A stretch of 32,570 bases of DNA from Guillardia theta CCMP2712. Its lineage: Eukaryota; Protista; Cryptophyta. Where the stretch lies: contig NW_005434594.1 in the NCBI RefSeq assembly GCF_000315625.1, forward strand, positions 375,946 to 408,515, read 5' to 3'. The translations under genes and the position numbers were made by a program. Under the pieces are notes generated by a model. That model ran no database searches. It was not told the DNA's origin and worked only from the letters and a program-made list of their open reading frames with translations. Positions 1-27,880 of the stretch are shown here, one piece after another (position 1 is the stretch's first letter; every line of letters starts with the position of its first letter).

Positions 1-58
1 CCTCCTCCTCCTCCTCCTCCACTTCCTCCTCCTCCTCCTCCTCCTCTCCTCCCCTCAC

Positions 59-2527
59 CTCAGCAATCCGTTGATGATGCTGGGGACGGAAGTCGAGGAG
101 GAGCGATCCCTCCACCAGATCTCCGTTGACCTCTCGACGAGACCTCGGGGCAGCCTGCCGATACAATGGAGGGAGAGGAGGGGGGGACGAGGACGAGGAC
201 GACGAGGAGCGAGGAGCGAGGAGCGAGGACAAGGATGACAAGGACGAGGACAAGGATGACGAGGAGGAGGACGACGAGGAAGAGGAGCGAGGAGGAGGAG
301 GAGGAGGAGCGAGGAGGAGGAGGAGGAGGAGGAGCAAGAAATGTGACCGTGAGCAACTTATCAGACACAGAGGAGACAGACCTGCAGCAGAGGTCGCGTG
401 CTTGTGGAGGTAGAGGAAGAAACAAATCCAGCGTTCGGGTGGGAGAGCACAAGGTCAGAGGAAGGGGAAGCATCGCAAGGAGCGAAGAAGGAGAAGGAGG
501 AGGAGAGGGTGAAAACTGGCGGACGGCGGTCGTTGTAGGGAGGGAAGAGAGTAGTCTGAAATCAGCAGGTGAGAAAAGCAAAGGAGGATATGTGACATTT
601 GTTAGACATGTAACATTCTGACATCTTTGCGTTGTCGTTCAAACATCGCGGACACGTCCAACATCTCAAAGATACAAGAGATGAGACCTCCTCACATCTG
701 CAAACTATCTGATTGCATACAAGAAACATGTCCTCTAGCATAGCAGGTATGATCGAAACGTCAATGCCCTTCGACGTGTCTCCTCCATCATTGCGGGATA
801 GACAATCTCACCTCAACATGTCGAGATCCCTTGCGCCAGCATGTCATCGAAGGGAGAGAATGACAAAGTATTCTATCCTCTCTTTCTATCCCCAACAAAT
901 CATTCAACCACTCTTCCTGCACGTTGAAGTCCTGAACACTGTTCGACATGTCAGGTGCTGACGAAGACAAGAGAGAGAGAGAAGGAGCAATCTGTGTGAG
1001 TTGTGTAGCGTGAAGAAACAAGAAATTGGCAGCAAGGGGCGTGAAAGTGAATGATGTCAAGTGTACAAGTGAAAGTTTCGCCAGATTCAAACGAACATGC
1101 GACATCAACAGGAGAAATCAGACGAAACCAGCGAACTGAGACACATACAAAGTCACGAGATCAATCGTCATCAAGACAGACAAACAAGTCAAGTCAAGTC
1201 AAGTCAAGACAAGTCAAGTCAAGTCAAGTCAAGTCAAGTCAAGTCAAGTCAAGTGAAGACAAGTCAAGTCAAGTCAAGTCAAGTCAAGACAAGTCAAGTC
1301 AAGTCAAGTCAAGTGTTGTATCCTCACCAAAGGAAGATGATTGTCTTGTTACGATGGCGAGCAAGCGCCATCTCCGTGTAGCATCGGATGTTCAGCTCAA
1401 AGTTGCGGCTGAGAAAGGCTACAAGGTAGTCGCATCTCTCGATAAGGTCGCAGAAGCTCGAGGACCTTCTGTCGTCTGCCACTTGCTCTCCTCGAGCCGC
1501 CAGCAGCTGATAGCAAGTGAGGGGCAGGAAGCGGAAGAGGAGAATGGAGGGGAAGAGAAGAGAGAGGAGGAGGAGGGGAGGGGAGGGAAGGGAAGGGGAG
1601 AAGGAGGGGAGAGAAGGAGAGGAAGGGAGGGAAGAGGAGGAGGAGAGGAGAAGCAGAGGATCAGGTGAGCAGCGGAGCTGACCTGCCTCACTTGTCTTGC
1701 TACATCAACATCAACATCGTCGTAGACGAGGAGCGCGCCGACATGTTCCTCCACCATGCCCCTGTGCCGCTCGCCGCTGAGAAGAAGTGCTCCGATCGCG
1801 TTGATGCAGGAGGAGGAGGAGGAGGAGGAGGAGGAGGAGGAGGCGATGGAACGGAGGGCCTTGAAGACTTGTTGTCTCATAAGATAGGAGTCTTTCCATC
1901 TGAGGTGCGAGGAGCGCAAGAACTCCTCCGACTGACTGTCCTGGAAGATGCGGAGGGAAGGGATATCTTCTATGACGGGGAACCTCACTGCTCTCCTCTC
2001 CTCCATCATCCGCCGGACGATGAGAGAGAAGGTCTGGTAGTTGACCGTTTCCCTCCCTGCTCCTGCTCCTGCTCCTGCTCCTGCTTCTGCTCCTGCTCCT
2101 GCACCCTCCTGCTCCTCAGCTCGTGCGTCCCGCGTTGCTTCCGCTAACCTCTCCTCAAGGTCCCTTGGCAGAACTGCGAGGCCGACACGATGGAGCTGCT
2201 CCAGCATACTAGAGGTGTCAACGGCACCCGAGTCGTTTGCCTGCTCCCTGAAAGTTTCGTCGATGAACTCGCTCAACGCCATCTCCCACGCGTCCTTGAA
2301 CGAGAGTCTCTTCTTCATGCTCAACATCGTGTAAGCTCTTTCCTCCACGACATCGTGCGGAGGAGCAGGAGGAGCAGGAGGAGCAGGAGGAGCAGGAGGA
2401 GCAGGAGGTTCGAGATCTGTCTCAGGAGCAGTATTGCTTCTCAGATCTTGGTAAGTGCACTTGATGATGTAGGAGAACACTTCCTCGTCCTGGCTGCTCC
2501 TGTCCCAGACGCAAATTTCTCTCCCAC

Positions 2528-2575
<48 letters not shown>

Positions 2576-5297
2576 GCCCAAGCTCCTCCTCCATCTCCAA
2601 CTTAAGCTCCTGCTCCTGCTCCCCCTGCTGTTTCTGTTCCTCCTCTTCCTGAACACGCTTCCGCTGCCGAATTTTCTGCTCTTGGTGAACGCGCCCGAAC
2701 ACTTGCTCCACTTCTTCTTTCTGCTCTAATCTCACCATGACCATCTTCACTGGCTGCCAGTCCCATCCTATCACATACACAGCAGCAGGAAAGTCGTGCA
2801 GTGCAAGAGGAGGAGTCTCTGGAGGACGAAGAAGAGCAGGAGAAGCAGCGGGAGGAGAAGGAAAAGCAGTAGGCTGAGGAGGAGAACTAGGAGAAGGAGG
2901 AGGAGAATCAAGAGGAGGAGGAGGAGGAGTTCGGTTCTTCCTGACAAGGCCCAGGACGTGAGAGGAGCAGAGGCGAGGGGAGCAGGCGAGCATCTCAATC
3001 CTGCGCACAGAATCGCCGATGCGCCCAAGGAAGTCCCAGGAGCTGGCGGAGAGGAAATCGAGCAGGTCATACTCCGTGACCTCGCTGCTTGACCGCAGGT
3101 TCTTCCCCCGAGCACTGAGACCGTCCCTGAGCTTCATGGCTCCTTCAAGGCAAACTGACGCCAGCTCCTGCACGAGGCCCGGGCTAGTCCCTTGGGCCAC
3201 CTCCGCCATCCAGGAGGAGAAGAAGGAGGAGAACTGCTGCGGGGTCAGCCCAGTCTTCATGTCTCTGTGCTGCTTCTTGACTAGACGGAATTGGCGAACG
3301 AAACTGTCAGTGAACTGCAGGAGGTTCAGGTTGGAGAGCCGTCGGTCCCATATGACCGTCATGGTTCGGATCTCAACGATCTGCTGCAGATGATCTGAAT
3401 GGAGGAGGGGTAGACATCCTTTGACTGGTTTCCCTCCAGCAGAGGAGGAGGAGGAGGAGGAGGATGAGGAGGAGGAGGAGAAGACAGCATGCAACCTAGA
3501 TCCAGCAGGGATCTGCCTGCGATCTGAAACAGGCACGCTGTCGAGGAGGAAGTAACATCGTATCATGCTATCTCCTGCTTCTCTCCCGTACACCTTGGGC
3601 GGATCCGCAACATCAACATGCTCATCTTGCAAGAACTGCCAGAAAATTCTCGTCAGGCCTCCCAAGGTTGCAGACTGTCTGGTTTCCTCGTCCTGCATAC
3701 AAAGTCATCACAGCTACCTCACAAAAGGGAACGTCAGCGGACCAAAATCAATCGCTCGACGAAGTCCAAGATGCCTTTCCCTCTGATTCGATCCCTGTTC
3801 CACCTGCTCCTCGTAGCCTCGACCATGGCGTTCACGCACCAACATCTCCGTTCGCTGTCGTCTTTGTGCAGGAGGAACATGTCGAAGAACAGGCGCGTCA
3901 GCAAGTCCAAGATGTCACGACGACGGACAAGACACATGTAAGACGGCCATGAGCCCGCACAGAGCAGCGACAGTCCCATCGTCGACAACTCTTTCACTGC
4001 AGACGACTTAGTTATGACTAGGACTCTGTACATCAGTTCGTTCACACGACTCTTCTTCAAGGCTTCCCGGCTTTCCTGGTGGCAGCACAACACAAGCAGA
4101 AGCTCAATGGTTGCTTTCAATTTGATCTCTCCCGTCTTCTCCTCCCCCTCGTCCACCACAACCCCAGCAGCACACCTCCCCAGCAGCTCGCACACCTTTT
4201 CCAGCAGGGTGTTGCCCTTGGACAGGAGAAACCTTGCAGCTGGTTGATAACACTGACAAACAACTTTCATGAGCTTCAACAAGGACAACTGAACTCTTGA
4301 CGACAAGTCAATCTCATGCATGACCGCGACGACATCTCGGAACGTGCCGCTCTCCACAAACTCACACGCCCCGTCGTCGTTGTCCCTCAAGACGGCAAAG
4401 AGACAGTTTGCTGCCCAGTGCTGCAGGTTCACGTCCTTGGATCTCAAGAGCTGAGCAAGAAGAGGAAGACAGGAGAGCTCTATGAACAAATTCTGCCTCC
4501 TCCTCCTTATCTCAACGTCAGAATGCCAACTTATCGAACAAATCTGAGACAGTGTGAGTGGAGAAGGAAGTCATCACATACTTCACCTTGCTGAACAAAC
4601 TCTCTCTAGCTATCTGCCTCTTCCCGTCCTTCTCTTCAATCTTCGCCATGATTAATGGCATCCACTTCCGCCGACCCGAGTCGATCGCACCCATCACGAA
4701 GCCTTCATTGCCCTTCAAAGAGCCATGCACGCATTCAACAAGTTTCCTCGACCAGTGAACGATCTCGAGGAAGACATCACAGCCCAGCTCGAGAAATGTC
4801 TCCATGCTCAGGCAAACATAGCAGGCCGCAGCCTCCACATCCTCCTCCCCCCGCATCCGCTCCCACCACCTCCCGATCTCCCTTGCCGCCCTGCCATCCT
4901 GTTCTGCATGTACAGATGCAGCCCCGGCAAACTTGAGCAAGAACACGTCCAGCACTTCATGTCGGAAGGTTCGAACCAGTCGCTGGCATCTCTGAAACGT
5001 GTGCGTCCTGACGTCCATGTTGGCTTGCATCCCAACCCACCTCCCCACAGCCGACACCTCTGCCAGGGGTTCTGCATGCTCCGAGCTCCGTTCGACCGTG
5101 TCGACTAGCCATGTGACAACCTCTGCGACTGAATTTTGTTCTGACATGCTGTCTATGACGTCTTCAAATCATTTCTCGTGGTCACATCGACGCCAGAACA
5201 ACCTCTCGACAACTTTGGGATAGTGGAGTGAAGACTCTGAAACAGCCTTGTGGAGCATGCAAGCTCCCATGGTTCCCACCAGGAAACGCTGGTACAT
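59..5297 (-). CDS. Large multi-exon ARM-repeat / EF-hand-like / TIR-domain protein; 3' end lies beyond the left edge of the window
   Basis: Manual spliced model on the minus strand, exons 5297-5203, 5148-4587, 4543-3743, 3692-1683, 1506-1328, 938-812, 768-688, 555-382, 154-59. All introns are GT..AG (54, 43, 50, 176, 389, 43, 132, 227 nt) with compatible phases, giving an open frame of 1375 codons that joins track ORFs 4518..5147, 3734..4489, 1419..3698 and 788..1108. The start codon (5297, 5357 or 5270) and the last three exons are less certain. Confidence 0.7.
174..334. repeat. GGA/GAC/GAG-rich low-complexity repeat, intronic in the minus-strand gene model; similar tracts at 1-56 and 1535-1660
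   Basis: Visible (GGA)n and (GACGAG)n runs lying between predicted GT/AG sites. Confidence 0.85.
890..1739 (-). other. TIR (TIR_2-like) domain encoded across three exons (1739-1683, 1506-1328, 938-~890)
   Basis: Spliced translation GALLVYDDVDVDVARQVRQ|LLAARGEQVADDRRSSSFCDLIERCDYLVAFLSRNFELNIRCYTEMALARHRNKTIIFLC|VQDFNVQEEWLNDLLG follows the TIR pattern: betaA-Y, alphaA ending L..RG, betaC 'LVAFLS', alphaC 'C..E', betaD 'KTIIFL'. The Glu codon is at 1374-1372. Branch-point-like CTCAC and CTGAC precede the two acceptors. Confidence 0.75.
1185..1314. repeat. (CAAGT)n pentanucleotide microsatellite inside intron 939..1327
   Basis: About 26 tandem CAAGT units with a few CAAGA/GAAGA variants. Confidence 0.95.
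1809..3481 (-). repeat. In-frame coding microsatellites of the large exon: poly-Ser (1809-1843, 3441-3481), (GA)n (~2057-2103), (PPA)n (~2360-2408), (EQ)n (~2529-2575)
   Basis: 3-, 6- and 9-bp unit repeats that keep the 670-codon exon in frame. Confidence 0.85.
3743..4543 (-). other. Armadillo/HEAT-like repeat region within the minus-strand gene
   Basis: ARM-like helical repeats: 'LFIELSCLPLLAQLLRSKDVNLQHWAANCLFAVL', 'CEFVESGTFRDVVAVM', 'SREALKKSRVNELMYRVL..SSAVKELSTMGLSLL', 'RDRIRGKGILDFVERLI'. Confidence 0.65.
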
Positions 5298-5706
5298 CCT
5301 CTGTCTCTTGTCTTCCCTTCCATTCATCTCTCTTCCCGTCTTCCTCCCTTCCGTCATCCCTCATCAATCTTAGTTTCCCGGCATACGAGCATGTTGGTTG
5401 AAAATTGAAGTATTTCAAGCCCGCCTAGGCTCAGCGGCTGTCAACAGGAGTCACTTTGCCTTCGGAGCGCCGGTGAACCGTCTTGCGCGGCGGAGGCTGC
5501 CAGGCAGCCCGGCCCGTGCCCCGGGGGCCGGGCCCGGGCTGCCGGGCGGGCGGGCGGGCGGGTGGGCAGCCGCCGGGCAGTGCTGAGCCTGTACGCCCGC
5601 CGGCGCCGGCCCCTGCCACTGTGATCAGTTAACTTAAATCGGAAATAGTAACTTGAAGTCATGATGATCGCCGGAGTCGGCGGCCCCGGATGGAGTCAAA
5701 GCTCAG

Positions 5707-6433: not shown

Positions 6434-6707
6434 AATCAGTACGAGGACGATGAGTATTGGTACATAATCAAAGGGGTATGCATTGAATAAGGAACGATGG
6501 CAGCACCGTGTACCCGAGCTAGCGTTTGACTGTCTACACGAATCGATGCAAGGTGAAACCTGCATGGGACGATATGTTGTCAGCAGCCTTCTAATAATCC
6601 CTCGTCTTCCCGTCTCCCTCCTAGATATCCACCCTCCATCGCCATCGCCTCGACCAGCCCTCTGTTTCGTCGCTTCGCACTCGCTCTCAAACCTGTCAGT
6701 TATCAGC

Positions 6708-7282
6708 ATGAATCAAGACCGTATGGAACATCTTTCAGATCAATCTACCTCCTCCAAACCTTCTCAGAAACCGCCCTCTAGTATGCAGCACAAGATCGTC
6801 GTCGTCAAGGCTAGACGCTACTGCACACTTCGTTGCAAGCCTCGCACGCTGGATCTCAGCATGGAGACCATGTCCTCCTACTTTCACATGCCCCTCGATG
6901 AGGCGGCGAAGAAGCTGGTGAGTCAACTGATACTAGCGCATGCTATTTTTCTTGACTCAAGGCACAGGGGATCGCTTCTACCACGCTCAAGCTCATCTGC
7001 CGCAAGCTTGGAGTTCCTCGATGGCCCTACCGAAACGTTCAGAAGGAGCAGAGACGATCCTTGGATCATTCGATTGGCGTTCAACCTTCCTTCATGTCGA
7101 CTAGCTCGTTGCCGGATAGAGGAACGGCAGTTGAGGACAAAAGGGGAGTGGCGGCCGGAGCAGTGTGTTTGATGGAAAGAGGGAGAGAGGAGTGGAGACG
7201 GGTGCGTGAGCTTCTCGGGGCTGAAGCACTTTTTGAGGAGGCGATGGAGCATGTGGGAGGGCGGGGGAGGTCAGGAAGGTAG
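6708..7282 (+). CDS. RWP-RK domain transcription factor (RKD/minimal type), 174 aa, join(6708..6917,6968..7282)
   Basis: Removing a 50-nt GTGAGT..CAG intron (6918-6967) gives 'LSMETMSSYFHMPLDEAAKKL|GIASTTLKLICRKLGVPRWPYRN', the RWP-RK signature. This joins track ORFs 6483..7172 and 7061..7282. Confidence 0.92.
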
Positions 7283-15161: not shown

Positions 15162-16601
15162 CCGTCGGACCGAGCGACAAGGCAGCGAGACTAGGAGAGC
15201 AGCAGAGCTCTGCAGGACTTTGAGGACGAGCGGTCAGGGACAGTAGTACCCCGAGCCTGCAAGGTTGGAAGTCATCTTTTGAGCCCTTAACGTGACTGCG
15301 CTACTCAATACATAGAGAAACAAGTTGAATGAGGCCTGAGGGGAGGGGCCGCTGACTCTATTCAGCCATCATGGCAGCAGCGAACTGAAAGAGTCTGAGC
15401 CGTCTGAGCCTGAAGAGAAACTAACAAGGATCCCCCTAGTGACGGCGAGTGAAGCGGGAAGACTCAGAGGCTCAAGCAGAGACTCATGATTGTCGGAGCC
15501 ACGGTTGAGGCGGCGGGGGGGCGCGCGGTCCGGGGATCGGACTTTGGCACCGTACTGTACTACGGTACCCAGTGACGGTACGGTAGCCAGTGCGGCGGAG
15601 TCCCGGGGGCGGCCTGCCCGCCGCGGCCCGGGGAGTTGCCCAGCCGGGCGGCCCGGCGCCGCCTGTGCCGGTGCCGGGCCGGTGACCGGCGTCACAGTCA
15701 CTACGCCGCCGGGCCCCGGCGGCGTACAATAGTCCCTCCTAGGCTCCAGCGGTCGCCGTTTCTTAAGTTACTATACTCAAAGTTAAGTTAATCAGCAGTA
15801 CGATAATGTTGATTATGCGCAGAACCATTCTCCCGCGCAATGCCAGCGATGTCCAGTGATCGCTGTGCCAGGCGGGCCGACGAGTCAGAGCGGGCGGCGG
15901 CCCGGCCCGGGAACTTGAACCGTCACTGAGTCAAGGTCCGTACCGTCTGGTCACCGTCCGCCGTCGGCGGCCGGCCGGGTTCCGGGCCGGGGGGATCTTC
16001 GGAACTTAGTTCGGCGCCGGGGCCCGGGCCGTCCCGGACTCAGGGCCCGGATTCATGTTGCGGGCGCCCTCGGACACTCAAGTGACTATCAGCCTTAAAC
16101 TTCAGTAAAGGATCCGAGACGGTGGTGGGTTTAGTTAGGGTTTAAGTTCAGTCCCACAAACAACTTTGAGACTCGGCTGGAAGGCAAGAGCGAGTTCCAC
16201 TTGGATCTTCCTGGTACTACCCCCTACCCCCTACTTGTCCCCAGGATCGCTGCTTAGTTCTCCTTATTCTCTTGCCTATACTGGTTGATCTATCTCCTTG
16301 CGCTGAGTGCAAAAACACCCTACCTCCTTACCTTGCCTCAATCAACTACCTACCTCCCGTCTCTTCATACCCCCCACCCCTACATATCTCTCTCCCCACC
16401 CCTCTAGACCCACCATTTCTTACCTACAGATTCCCTCCTTCCTTGGTATATCCCCCAACCTGCTTCCCGCTCCAAGCAAACCCCCTGCTCGAGCTCCCTC
16501 CCTCTACATCTCCCTCCCTTCCCTATCTTCAGCTCTTCTTCAATCAAGGTCTTCATAGCTCTCCTACTTGCATTTGCGATCAAAAAGCCTCTTCCTCCTC
16601 C

Positions 16602-19058
16602 ATGTCTGCTCCGAGCAGCTCCGAAACTCTGGCTGTGATGCCAATGAAACGGAAGTACGAGTTCCTGCAGGAGGTCTGCAGCGAGGATGCTGCGAGGTAC
16701 CTGATCCTTGCATGTGCTGGTATGAGAAGCTCACTGACGCGTGCTCGCAGCATATGGGATCAGACGTGCGGAGACTCTGGTAAGATGACAGACCTCCTCA
16801 GCCAGCGCTTTGTGGACTGCAACACATGCTCCTCCCAGCAGCATATCGACGACGACGACGACGAGGACGAGGAGGAGGAGTCAGGCCGCGAGTACTTCTG
16901 CGTGATCTGCCAGGAGACAGACTTTGACATGAGCAACAAGGTGAGCTTGACCTGCCGTCACATGTTCCATGCCTCTTGCTTCAAGAGGCTGCTTGAGCAC
17001 GTCCTCCATGACGAGCAAGAGTCCCTGGTGCCCCCTACCTGCCCTCATGCCGGATGCAGCACCATAGTCGGCTACAACATCCAAGCTCTGCTCCTCATCT
17101 ACGCTGACGATGAGCAAGCGCAGCGTCTGCTCAAGGCTCACGATAGCAAGAAGAGCAAGTACGACGCTTGGAAGTTGGGTCACCTGCCCTGCTTGTCCCC
17201 TTGCTGCCAGGCCGTCTCGAGGCTGGTGTTGATTGGACATGCGGCGAGCGAGGCTACGGTCAAGTGCGACAGCTGCATGGCCACCTACTGCGCTGCTTGC
17301 TCGATGGCGTCCGGAAGCTTGGTTCCCTCCCACATTCTCGTCGGCTGCGAGCAGCGAGTCCTGACTGAGGAGGGGTTGCGAGCTCTCGATCAGGTGTACG
17401 ATGCGACGGGTGATGAGCTGAGACGAATGAGACTGCGCGACCCTCCCGCAGCGCTCAGACGGTACCCTCGCCCGCCGCCCGCCGCCCGCGACCCTCGCCC
17501 GCCCACAGTTGACGGCAGTCAAACGCATGTGGCGGCAGCAGACACGAGGACGCAGGAGGTCGAGGCGCAAGGGACCGAGCAGGCAAACAGAGGCGCTGAA
17601 GCCCAGCAAGACCCCCGGCTGCGAGCACGACTACTTTGGATGGATCTGTACAGGGGGGAAGACCGACTGGAGGGCGAGGAACGCCTTGAGCTCCATGAAC
17701 ACGTGCGCTGGAGGATGAGGAGATTTGAGGAGGAAGGCGACTACGTGGACGAGGAGCTGCAGCAGACTATGCAAGGCATGCGAGACCGGCTCAGCAGCAT
17801 CAAGAGGAGGGAGGAGCTAGAGATCTCCGCCATTTCCCGGCAGCTCCATGCTCGTCCTGCCGACAAGGTCGCCGTCGAACTGCTCGATGCGCGTCTGCGG
17901 ATCGTCGAGCAGAAGCGAGAGCTGTTCGAGAGCACGCGACAGACGCTCGAGGGCATGATCCGCAACCCGGCGGTAGAGGACCCGCAGCACCGTGCTCCGC
18001 CGGAGGCGACGACGTCGCTGAGCCTTCAAGACATCCACAGCATGTGCGATAAAGCTTTTCTCACCTCCCTGAAGGCGAGGATTAGCAGGATCGCCAGCGG
18101 CGAAGAGCGCGAGGAGGCCCGAGCAGAGGCTCCCAGTGACCAGGAGGAGATCGCAAGGACCTCCAAGCCCTGCACCAAGTGCGGGTATCGCATCGTCAAG
18201 ATGGGAGGATGCGACCACATGACGTGCAGGAAGTGCCGGCACGAGTTCTGCTGGAGGTGCCTCAAACCAACGATCGACCACTTCCACAGCAGCTGTCAGG
18301 GGAAGCCAGACCTGCTGTCGTTCTCTGAGGAGCTACAGCCTGCCATCAAGGACGTCATCGACAAGTACCGCGGAGTCGAGTCGCCTATCGAGAGCAGCCT
18401 AGTCGAGTACGCGCACAGGCACTTGGCTCCCGGCCAGCCTGTCGACGAGGACAGGAAGAGAGCGGACTCGCAGCGGATCTCCGCAATGCTGGAGCGGCGC
18501 GAGCCCTTCATGCTCAGATACTTCGACCCCCGCGAGGTCAGACGCAGAGCGGAGATGAGGAGACTGCAGGATATGCAGCGGGAGGTTGAGCAAGAGAGGA
18601 TCGCCTGCTCCTTTGTGCTCCGTCAAGTCCGCGACAGCAGTCGCAGCCCCATCAGCAAGGACGCAGCCCTCCGAGTCTGCTCGGACCCCTCCAAGCAGTA
18701 CCTCAAGTACCGGGCCGCCAAGCGCAGCCTCTTGGACGCGCAGGAGAAGATGAGGAGGGAGACACGTGAAGCCCCGGTTGACTACGTCGAGCGTCAGCGC
18801 CGCATGATCGACTGTCAGTGCCACGTCATCGACGTGGATCTTGCTCGCCTGGAGATGCAGAAGCAAGCTTGCGTCCTCATGGGCATGGACGTGCCTCCCT
18901 GGCTCCTGTCATGCTCCGAGCGGCTCTCAGATGCCAAGGAGCAGCAGGCGCAAGACATCAGCCAGGCTGTCTGCACCAGGACCTTTCTGGACGCTCATCG
19001 AGACTACATGCTCTCGAGGATGAGCCAACGTGTAGAGCCGAGAGTCCTAGAATGGTGA
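16602..19058 (+). CDS. RBR E3 ubiquitin ligase copy 3 (818 aa)
   Basis: Intact ORF with the same RING1/IBR/RING2 motifs as copy 1. Confidence 0.9.
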   Translation: MSAPSSSETLAVMPMKRKYEFLQEVCSEDAARYLILACAGMRSSLTRARSIWDQTCGDSGKMTDLLSQRFVDCNTCSSQQHIDDDDDEDEEEESGREYFCVICQETDFDMSNKVSLTCRHMFHASCFKRLLEHVLHDEQESLVPPTCPHAGCSTIVGYNIQALLLIYADDEQAQRLLKAHDSKKSKYDAWKLGHLPCLSPCCQAVSRLVLIGHAASEATVKCDSCMATYCAACSMASGSLVPSHILVGCEQRVLTEEGLRALDQVYDATGDELRRMRLRDPPAALRRYPRPPPAARDPRPPTVDGSQTHVAAADTRTQEVEAQGTEQANRGAEAQQDPRLRARLLWMDLYRGEDRLEGEERLELHEHVRWRMRRFEEEGDYVDEELQQTMQGMRDRLSSIKRREELEISAISRQLHARPADKVAVELLDARLRIVEQKRELFESTRQTLEGMIRNPAVEDPQHRAPPEATTSLSLQDIHSMCDKAFLTSLKARISRIASGEEREEARAEAPSDQEEIARTSKPCTKCGYRIVKMGGCDHMTCRKCRHEFCWRCLKPTIDHFHSSCQGKPDLLSFSEELQPAIKDVIDKYRGVESPIESSLVEYAHRHLAPGQPVDEDRKRADSQRISAMLERREPFMLRYFDPREVRRRAEMRRLQDMQREVEQERIACSFVLRQVRDSSRSPISKDAALRVCSDPSKQYLKYRAAKRSLLDAQEKMRRETREAPVDYVERQRRMIDCQCHVIDVDLARLEMQKQACVLMGMDVPPWLLSCSERLSDAKEQQAQDISQAVCTRTFLDAHRDYMLSRMSQRVEPRVLEW

Positions 19059-19300: not shown

Positions 19301-20002
19301 NNNNNNNNNNNNNNNNNNNNNNNNNNNNNNNNNNNNNNNNNNNNNNNNNNNNNNNNNNNNNNNNNNNNNNNNNNNNNNNNNNNNNNNNNNNNNNNNNNNN
19401 NNNNNNNNNNNNNNNNNNNNNNNNNNNNNNNNNNNNNNNNNNNNNNNNNNNNNNNNNNNNNNNNNNNNNNNNNNNNNNNNNNNNNNNNNNNNNNNNNNNN
19501 NNNNNNNNNNNNNNNNNNNNNNNNNNNNNNNNNNNNNNNNNNNNNNNNNNNNNNNNNNNNNNNNNNNNNNNNNNNNNNNNNNNNNNNNNNNNNNNNNNNN
19601 NNNNNNNNNNNNNNNNNNNNNNNNNNNNNNNNNNNNNNNNNNNNNNNNNNNNNNNNNNNNNNNNNNNNNNNNNNNNNNNNNNNNNNNNNNNNNNNNNNNN
19701 NNNNNNNNNNNNNNNNNNNNNNNNNNNNNNNNNNNNNNNNNNNNNNNNNNNNNNNNNNNNNNNNNNNNNNNNNNNNNNNNNNNNNNNNNNNNNNNNNNNN
19801 NNNNNNNNNNNNNNNNNNNNNNNNNNNNNNNNNNNNNNNNNNNNNNNNNNNNNNNNNNNNNNNNNNNNNNNNNNNNNNNNNNNNNNNNNNNNNNNNNNNN
19901 NNNNNNNNNNNNNNNNNNNNNNNNNNNNNNNNNNNNNNNNNNNNNNNNNNNNNNNNNNNNNNNNNNNNNNNNNNNNNNNNNNNNNNNNNNNNNNNNNNNN
20001 NN
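19301..20002. other. Assembly gap (702 N) covering the third spacer
   Basis: Run of N. Confidence 1.
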
Positions 20003-27780: not shown

Positions 27781-27880
27781 NNNNNNNNNNNNNNNNNNNN
27801 NNNNNNNNNNNNNNNNNNNNNNNNNNNNNNNNNNNNNNNNNNNNNNNNNNNNNNNNNNNNNNNNNNNNNNNNNNNNNNNN
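27781..27880. other. Assembly gap (100 N, probably an unknown-size placeholder)
   Basis: Exactly 100 N where spacer 1 has only 43 bp (12211-12253). Confidence 0.95.

Follow-up and report, generated by a model that had tools for sequence, protein, structure and literature searches.

An expressed nuclear gene of Guillardia theta CCMP2712 with at least seven exons lies on the minus strand at the start of the stretch analyzed here, a window of 32,570 nucleotides (nt) on contig NW_005434594.1 (positions 375,946 to 408,515), to which all coordinates refer unless another contig is named. Its product would be a multi-domain protein in which ARM-like repeats precede a divergent TIR domain that keeps a Glu in the catalytic position. 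The features of the gene are listed below in the direction of transcription, with amino acids (aa) numbered from the predicted start and X1 and X2 denoting the sequencing runs described afterward.

4587..5147, minus strand: exon 1, aa 1-187; ATG at 5147-5145; X1 contig unbroken over 4587-5400
4544..4586, minus strand: intron 1, 43 nt, GT..AG; joint 4543->4587 in X1 and X2 contigs
3743..4543, minus strand: exon 2, aa 188-454; predicted ARM-like helical repeats
3693..3742, minus strand: intron 2, 50 nt, GT..AG; joint 3691->3742 (cut +1) in X1 and X2 contigs
1683..3692, minus strand: exon 3, aa 455-1124; unbroken open reading frame (ORF), mostly covered by X1 transcript contigs
2151..2264, minus strand: degenerate EF-hand-like segment, aa 931-968; Gln at loop position 1 and Ser at 12
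1507..1682, minus strand: intron 3, 176 nt, GT..AG, 90% C+T; joint 1506->1683 in X2 contig
890..1736, minus strand: TIR-type domain (predicted), aa 1107-1200, on exons 3, 4 and 5 (coding 1736-1683, 1506-1328 and 938-890)
1328..1506, minus strand: exon 4, aa 1125-1183; predicted TIR core with betaB, short BB loop, alphaB, betaC, alphaC and betaD
1372..1374, minus strand: GAG codon of Glu1169 (motif C-Y-T-E), which aligns with the catalytic TIR Glu
939..1327, minus strand: intron 4, 389 nt, GT..AG; joint 938->1328 in X2 contig
812..938, minus strand: exon 5, aa 1184-1226; closes the TIR with its conserved-Trp helix and opens the conserved C-terminal region; X2 contig, aligned with P0002
556..811, minus strand: intron 5, 256 nt, GT..AG; joint 555->812 in X2 contig
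382..555, minus strand: exon 6, aa 1227-1284; conserved C-terminal region; X2 contig, colinear with the homologue P0002
155..381, minus strand: intron 6, 227 nt, GT..AG; joint 153->381 (cut +1) in X2 contig
1..154, minus strand: exon 7, aa 1285-1335 and beyond; end of the conserved region, then a poly-Glu microsatellite running into an assembly gap

Four public sequencing runs (X1, X2, X9, and X16) were aligned to window 1-5400. Run X9 retains the introns, which identifies it as genomic DNA, and X1 and X2 consequently behave as RNA. Exact splice joints are seen in transcript contigs from two studies, and one 971-nt contig of X2 skips the introns at 1507-1682, 939-1327, 556-811, and 155-381 exactly. 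All six introns are GT..AG on the minus strand, and at the joints 1506->1683 and 938->1328 of this contig the intron ends read CT..AC on the plus strand. The seven spliced exons amount to 4005 nt without a stop codon and encode 1335 aa, a lower bound for the protein. Upstream, an in-frame stop lies 8 codons before the ATG at 5147, within a contiguous transcript contig (4587-5400); at the other end the gene exits the window at base 1 into an assembly gap of 1901 N, and the X2 contig extends 305 letters past the part fitting the window. Exon 7 also contains a possible alternative donor, GTGAGG, at 58. In the assembly searched (87,145,349 bases in 669 contigs), the TIR exon is found at a single locus, with no retrocopy.

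The initial annotation, made from the sequence alone, had placed the gene at 890-4543, limits that turn out to be too narrow at both ends, as coding starts at the ATG at 5147 and leaves the window at base 1. Its two inner junctions, 1683/1506 and 1328/938, are present exactly in the X2 transcript contig, and both introns open with GT and close with CAG on the minus strand. Also, the introns that it described as microsatellite-filled do contain microsatellites, with 90% C+T in 1682-1507 and a (CAAGT)26 array on the plus strand of intron 4 at 1185-1314 (Tandem Repeats Finder), and the spliced peptide that it quoted is reproduced, with the Glu codon at 1374-1372.

The TIR domain and its environmental relatives

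Scanned alone, exon 4 matches a single Pfam family, TIR_2 (PF13676; E 0.0061, 17.5 bits, profile positions 37-87 of 122), and the equivalent domain of the homologue P0002 has this family as its best and only match (E 6.2e-5, 23.9 bits, profile positions 3-93 of 122). The flanking pieces of the domain (window 1683-1802 and 812-937) give no Pfam match alone. In a language-model map of proteins (Atlas), TIR_2 clusters make up almost all neighbors of P0002 365-500, with a score of 0.93. A hidden Markov model (HMM) built from 17 canonical TIR_2 domains, taken from the at least 22 six-frame matches in this genome, gives the spliced domain 28.0 bits, compared with 10.8 at most in 5000 shuffles. Moreover, an hhalign comparison of the Guillardia protein, P0002, and P0004 with the same 17 domains returns a probability of 96.9% and an E value of 2e-10 over 94 columns, spanning from betaA (A-L-L-V-Y on v-f-i-S-Y) to the Trp-bearing helix that follows betaD, and a MAFFT alignment has an identical register. 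In the HMM, MAFFT, and hhalign alignments alike, the C-Y-T-E motif falls on the C-R-x-E column of canonical TIRs, and its Glu is conserved in three of three family members (Guillardia protein, P0002, and P0004). By these comparisons the segment aa 1107-1200 is classed as a genuine but divergent TIR domain with a Glu in the catalytic position, in agreement with the initial annotation.

Structure prediction was performed on the homologue. AlphaFold2 (AF2) run on P0002 340-600 with a five-row alignment reached a predicted local distance difference test (pLDDT) of 36, and no fold search was made from this model. When canonical TIRs were added to the alignment, the model of P0002 362-500 adopted the order E-H-E-H-E-H-E-H, with a core pLDDT of 70-83 and a mean of 63.5. 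A Foldseek search with this seeded model ranks the TIRs of MyD88, RPS4, SARM1, SPARTA, and RUN1 best, with a probability of 1.0 and template modeling (TM) scores of 0.45-0.54, a result that agrees with a TIR fold.

The domain departs from its canonical counterparts in the BB-loop/alphaB region, which in TIRs that act as NADases shapes the active site and the head-to-tail assembly contact. Between the Asp of betaB and betaC there are 15 residues, against 23 in the paralogues of this genome; hhalign places deletions of 5+7 columns here, and MAFFT of 8-13. The shortened BB loop noticed at the outset is thus confirmed, and part of alphaB is missing too. The canonical TIR_2 proteins of G. theta and other protists, including L1IYH1, share with this domain the superfamily, the order of strands and helices, the C-x-x-E in alphaC, and the Trp helix after betaD. 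However, the Guillardia gene scores below the Pfam cut-off, has 8-12 residues fewer in BB-loop/alphaB and an Arg in place of Asn/Trp before the Glu, and is split by introns, whereas many of the paralogues have an open frame of ~1300 aa free of introns; its flanking domains are different, too. L1IYH1 is also a different locus, on contig C63, whereas this gene is on C80.

When the 59-aa core exon (exon 4) was searched against 1.84 billion representative proteins, one real relative was recovered, P0002, with 45% identity to exon 4 (P0002 394-451). The top match of this search, P0001, was discarded as an artefact, a perfect repeat of 1956 aa. P0002 is an intron-less ORF of 811 aa on a 12-kb metagenome contig and has no locus in the Guillardia genome. 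Together with P0003 and P0004 it makes up the only genuine relatives among the representative proteins, all unnamed environmental ORFs of 811-826 aa (GCA_041447075.1, which is JGI 3300059473, and GCA_041443025.1); they count as two environmental relatives, and there are only two independent lineages from which to judge the conservation of the Glu. A metagenome scan with P0002 found no further relative, a word-index protein search with a 759-aa ORF of the gene found nothing, its candidates being swamped by low-complexity words, and the search with the ARM exon found only P0005, an 86%-identical fragment on an ENA contig.

In a blastp comparison, aa 1059-1308 of the spliced protein match P0002 326-576 at 34% identity (E 2e-37) in a single colinear match that runs unbroken across four exon junctions. 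Because P0002 is intron-less, this colinearity supports the splice model independently of the transcripts. Weaker colinear matches to P0002 occur upstream, at the EF-hand and at a G-W-x-W motif. The three environmental proteins have in common with the Guillardia protein the W-x-W motif segment, the position of the EF-hand, a short-BB-loop TIR with the Glu, and a conserved region of 110 aa that ends in L-D-F-R-P and is followed by a charged tail. They differ from it in being intron-less, in lacking the ARM part in the ORFs as called, which start after the ARM region, and in the first EF-hand loop, which is canonical in them (D-x-D-x-S-G...E) and degenerate in the Guillardia protein.

Other regions of the protein and surroundings of the gene

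No domain is recognizable in exon 1 (aa 1-187), where the Pfam scan gave no match. The ARM-like repeats that the initial annotation had placed upstream in the same long open frame receive support from several sides: exon 2 matches Pfam Arm with E 0.031 and 14.8 bits, below the 20.6 cut-off, phmmer against the PDB finds the designed armadillo proteins 4rzp (E 7.9e-5) and 4rv1 (E 0.0026) as well as PF16, and the Atlas neighbors are ARM/HEAT/KAP clusters at 0.95-0.96. Exon 2 is therefore described as ARM-like, a classification drawn from these matches.

The ARM and TIR parts are ~650 residues apart, with low-complexity and EF-hand-like sequence between them. The TIR begins in exon 3, which supplies its first strand and helix; the exon also carries the EF-hand-like segment and low-complexity runs encoded by microsatellites (poly-S, EQ, PPA, and GA), and the Pfam scan finds no domain in it. 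Within this exon, two intervals (window 2341-2520 and 2881-3060) are marked in every run by numerous false joints and a very high contig depth. The raw reads of X16 fall nearly all in 2341-2520, and they correspond to cross-matches of PPA/P-rich coding microsatellites, not to expression of the TIR gene.

The EF-hand-like segment proposed initially has weak support. By blastp it matches, in colinear order, P0002 aa 160-198 (E 0.058), a canonical EF-hand that itself matches Pfam EF-hand_7 with E 4e-4; on the other hand, exon 3 gives no Pfam EF-hand match and lacks the canonical 12-residue loop. Because Gln and Ser occupy loop positions 1 and 12, Ca2+ binding has probably been lost in the Guillardia protein.

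Further sequence C-terminal to the TIR had also been predicted, and ~110 residues after the domain are indeed conserved with P0002; the L-D-F-R-P motif in exon 7 is common to both proteins. This region has no Pfam match, and its Atlas neighbors are at noise level. Beyond the gap, a highly charged, coiled-coil-like frame of 206 aa (C80:373427-374044, minus strand) abuts the far edge of the 1901 N and ends in a stop. It starts in the same GAG/AGG microsatellite, shares the strand of the gene, and is present in the same RNA runs. In P0002, the conserved region is followed by a coiled-coil tail; a tblastn search of the DNA beyond the gap with P0002 gives nothing significant. The TIR gene probably has its 3' end here.

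Six-frame translation of the genome yields at least 22 TIR_2 loci, this gene being one of at least 23 TIR loci. The L1IYH1 locus is at C63:189350-189529 (plus strand), within an open frame of 1392 aa and with 100% identity over 60 residues, and a 77%-identical paralogue of it is at C33:44211-44390. Near-identical intron-less frames of ~1300 aa occur on contigs C150, C149, C23, C92, C184, C221, C228, and C33, each with a canonical TIR_2 (E ~1e-16) preceded by Cys-rich C-x-x-C motifs. Their copy number and near-identity suggest a recent expansion or a mobile unit.

Elsewhere in the window, a 3.9-kb unit occurs in tandem in at least six copies over 8500-32570, up to the contig end, with 96-100% identity between the copies and N runs at 19301-20002 and 27781-27880 in the array. 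In each unit, a long ORF (up to 928 aa) encodes a RING finger and IBR domains (IBR_1 E 7.8e-11), for example at 16272-19058 on the plus strand; from these domains, the ORFs are assigned as RBR-type E3 ubiquitin-ligase-like genes. The presence of such a near-identical ligase gene array beside the TIR gene is unusual. Between the two, a 229-aa ORF (6483-7172, plus strand) has a weak RWP-RK match (E 2.6e-4), below the cut-off.

Proposed function and competing explanations

TIR domains are immune and cell-death modules of bacteria, plants, and animals. The explanation favored overall, held at about an even chance, is that the gene encodes an expressed multi-domain TIR-effector protein with possible cleavage of nicotinamide adenine dinucleotide (NAD+) through Glu1169. 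The protein would be cytosolic and of at least 1335 aa, with an N-terminal part followed by the ARM-like repeats, a ~650-aa linker, partly of low complexity and carrying a degenerate EF-hand pair, the TIR, the ~110-aa region, and a probable coiled coil. Its role would be TIR-effector signaling in a cell-autonomous immune or stress pathway, where the helical repeats would serve to sense or dock a partner and to exert control, the C-terminal region and the coiled coil would bring TIR domains together, and the assembled TIRs would cleave NAD+ via Glu1169, leading to a signal of the cyclic ADP-ribose (cADPR) type or to NAD+ depletion. Cleavage through Glu1169, considered separately, is plausible from the alignments at somewhat below an even chance, roughly on a par with a TIR that serves as a scaffold.

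Several observations weigh against the effector reading. On the side of the gene model, the ARM and TIR parts are not spanned by any single transcript contig, as microsatellites interrupt the contigs; the TIR exons were assembled in run X2 only, the raw RNA reads of X16 give the gene hardly any coverage, and the link to the frame beyond the gap is inferred. As for the domain, TIR_2 is the only family found, as the initial annotation anticipated, but its scores (17.5 bits for the exon and 23.9 bits for the P0002 domain) remain under the 28-bit gathering cut-off, and PADLOC and NCBIfam scans gave no match. The thin family profile matched no solved TIR among PDB sequences, which places the domain far from all solved examples; a PsbX match in that search was a chance hit. 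Also, the fold of the seeded model is not independent evidence, since the alignment included canonical TIRs and it was the homologue that was modeled. Finally, the BB-loop/alphaB region lacks 8-12 residues of its usual length, an Arg lies four residues before the Glu where Trp (or Asn) is usual, and among Glu-bearing TIRs of unicellular non-animal eukaryotes 4 of 29 were active (bioRxiv 10.64898/2026.04.20.719644).

Alternatively, the TIR would be a non-enzymatic interaction module in an adaptor that assembles partners by TIR-TIR contacts, and the Glu of this very small family would be retained structurally or by chance. This is a serious competitor, with a likelihood of a third or slightly above. 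The shorter BB-loop/alphaB and the absence of the Trp four residues before the Glu point to it, as do the judgment of Glu conservation from just two independent lineages and the absence of product from most Glu-bearing eukaryotic TIRs screened (25 of 29 from protists and 49 of 61 from animals; bioRxiv 10.64898/2026.04.20.719644). However, the Glu and the C-x-x-E survive at 34% overall identity to P0002, the screen, made on isolated domains in E. coli, gives too low a count of enzymes that require activation, and another TIR of G. theta is active, L1IYH1 producing cADPR and depleting NAD+ in E. coli (bioRxiv 10.64898/2026.04.20.719644). A reaction on a substrate other than NAD+, as by a nucleotide N-glycosidase or a nucleic-acid-directed enzyme with the TIR/nucleoside-deoxyribosyltransferase fold, is highly improbable: ranks 5, 6, and 13 of the Foldseek search are nucleoside 2'-deoxyribosyltransferases and the cytidine monophosphate (CMP) N-glycosidase BcmB, which share the fold and the catalytic Glu, but the sequence profiles match TIR_2 only, the Atlas neighbors are TIR clusters, and hhalign aligns the domain to canonical TIRs. 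Less probable still, and close to negligible, is a chance resemblance in a segment that is not a TIR. All Pfam scores are below the cut-off, no solved TIR is found by sequence, and the first AF2 model has a pLDDT of 36, as such a resemblance would have it; nonetheless, two homologues that are 34% identical each match TIR_2 alone at corresponding profile positions, and the hhalign E value of 2e-10, the 28 bits compared with 10.8 at most in 5000 shuffles, and the TIR neighbors in Atlas all go against it.

SARM1 is an animal NADase with the order ARM-SAM-SAM-TIR, in which rings of the SAM domains oligomerize. The initial annotation had taken the gene for a SARM1-like NADase whose N-terminal ARM repeats would autoinhibit the TIR until released by a metabolite or a partner, and this is now considered improbable, at around one chance in ten. 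In its favor, ARM-like repeats and a Glu-bearing TIR occur in one long reading frame, as helical ARM-type repeats N-terminal to a Glu-bearing TIR do in the single polypeptide of SARM1, the SARM1 TIR is among the Foldseek matches of the seeded homologue model, and a separate oligomerizing element is likely in both proteins (the SAM rings in SARM1 and the probable coiled coil here). However, the absence of SAM domains, already remarked on, is confirmed in the Pfam scan and in the exons scanned with E up to 10, and the Guillardia protein differs in the linker of ~650 aa, with the degenerate EF-hand pair, that separates ARM and TIR, and in the extra conserved sequence at the C-terminal side. Neither the ARM exon nor the TIR-family profile matched any of the many SARM1 chains in the PDB with E up to 10, and the homologue ORF begins after the ARM region. 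The Foldseek comparison, made with the model of the homologue, returns TIR folds with SARM1 among them, as had been anticipated, but SARM1 ranks no better than MyD88, RPS4 and other plant TIRs, or SPARTA. Neither an allosteric pocket nor the allosteric regulation by nicotinamide mononucleotide (NMN) and NAD+ has evidence in the Guillardia protein, and the sole support for autoinhibition by the ARM part is that the two parts share a reading frame. The protein is thus not a member of the SARM1 family, and the combination of ARM and TIR is at most an analogous arrangement.

A more specific form of the effector reading, rather unlikely but somewhat less so than autoinhibition of the SARM1 type, is that the gene and its two relatives constitute a rare eukaryotic TIR clade with a short BB loop, an EF-hand pair, a new C-terminal domain, and a coiled coil, in which Ca2+ or a partner bound to the ARM part would switch on Glu-dependent NAD+ cleavage. 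If true, Ca2+ and cADPR-type signaling would be linked in a cryptophyte by an architecture unlike those of SARM1, TNLs, or Thoeris; the Ca2+ switch would apply to the relatives with an intact EF-hand.

Significance for TIR proteins of protists

The measurement of TIR enzymology in protists has only just begun, and this gene adds to it a sub-threshold TIR that the Pfam gathering cut-off would miss, in which the Glu is kept and BB-loop/alphaB is partly lost. In the literature searched, no description was found of this domain order or of a short-loop TIR. The TIR superfamily itself is known, and what would be new is the architecture, with ARM-like repeats, a degenerate EF-hand, a TIR, a conserved domain, and a probable coiled coil in succession. 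The existence of a sub-threshold TIR here also implies that counts of algal TIR proteins obtained from domain scans are lower bounds. Moreover, the gene offers a natural test case of whether a TIR with a short BB loop can still cleave NAD+.

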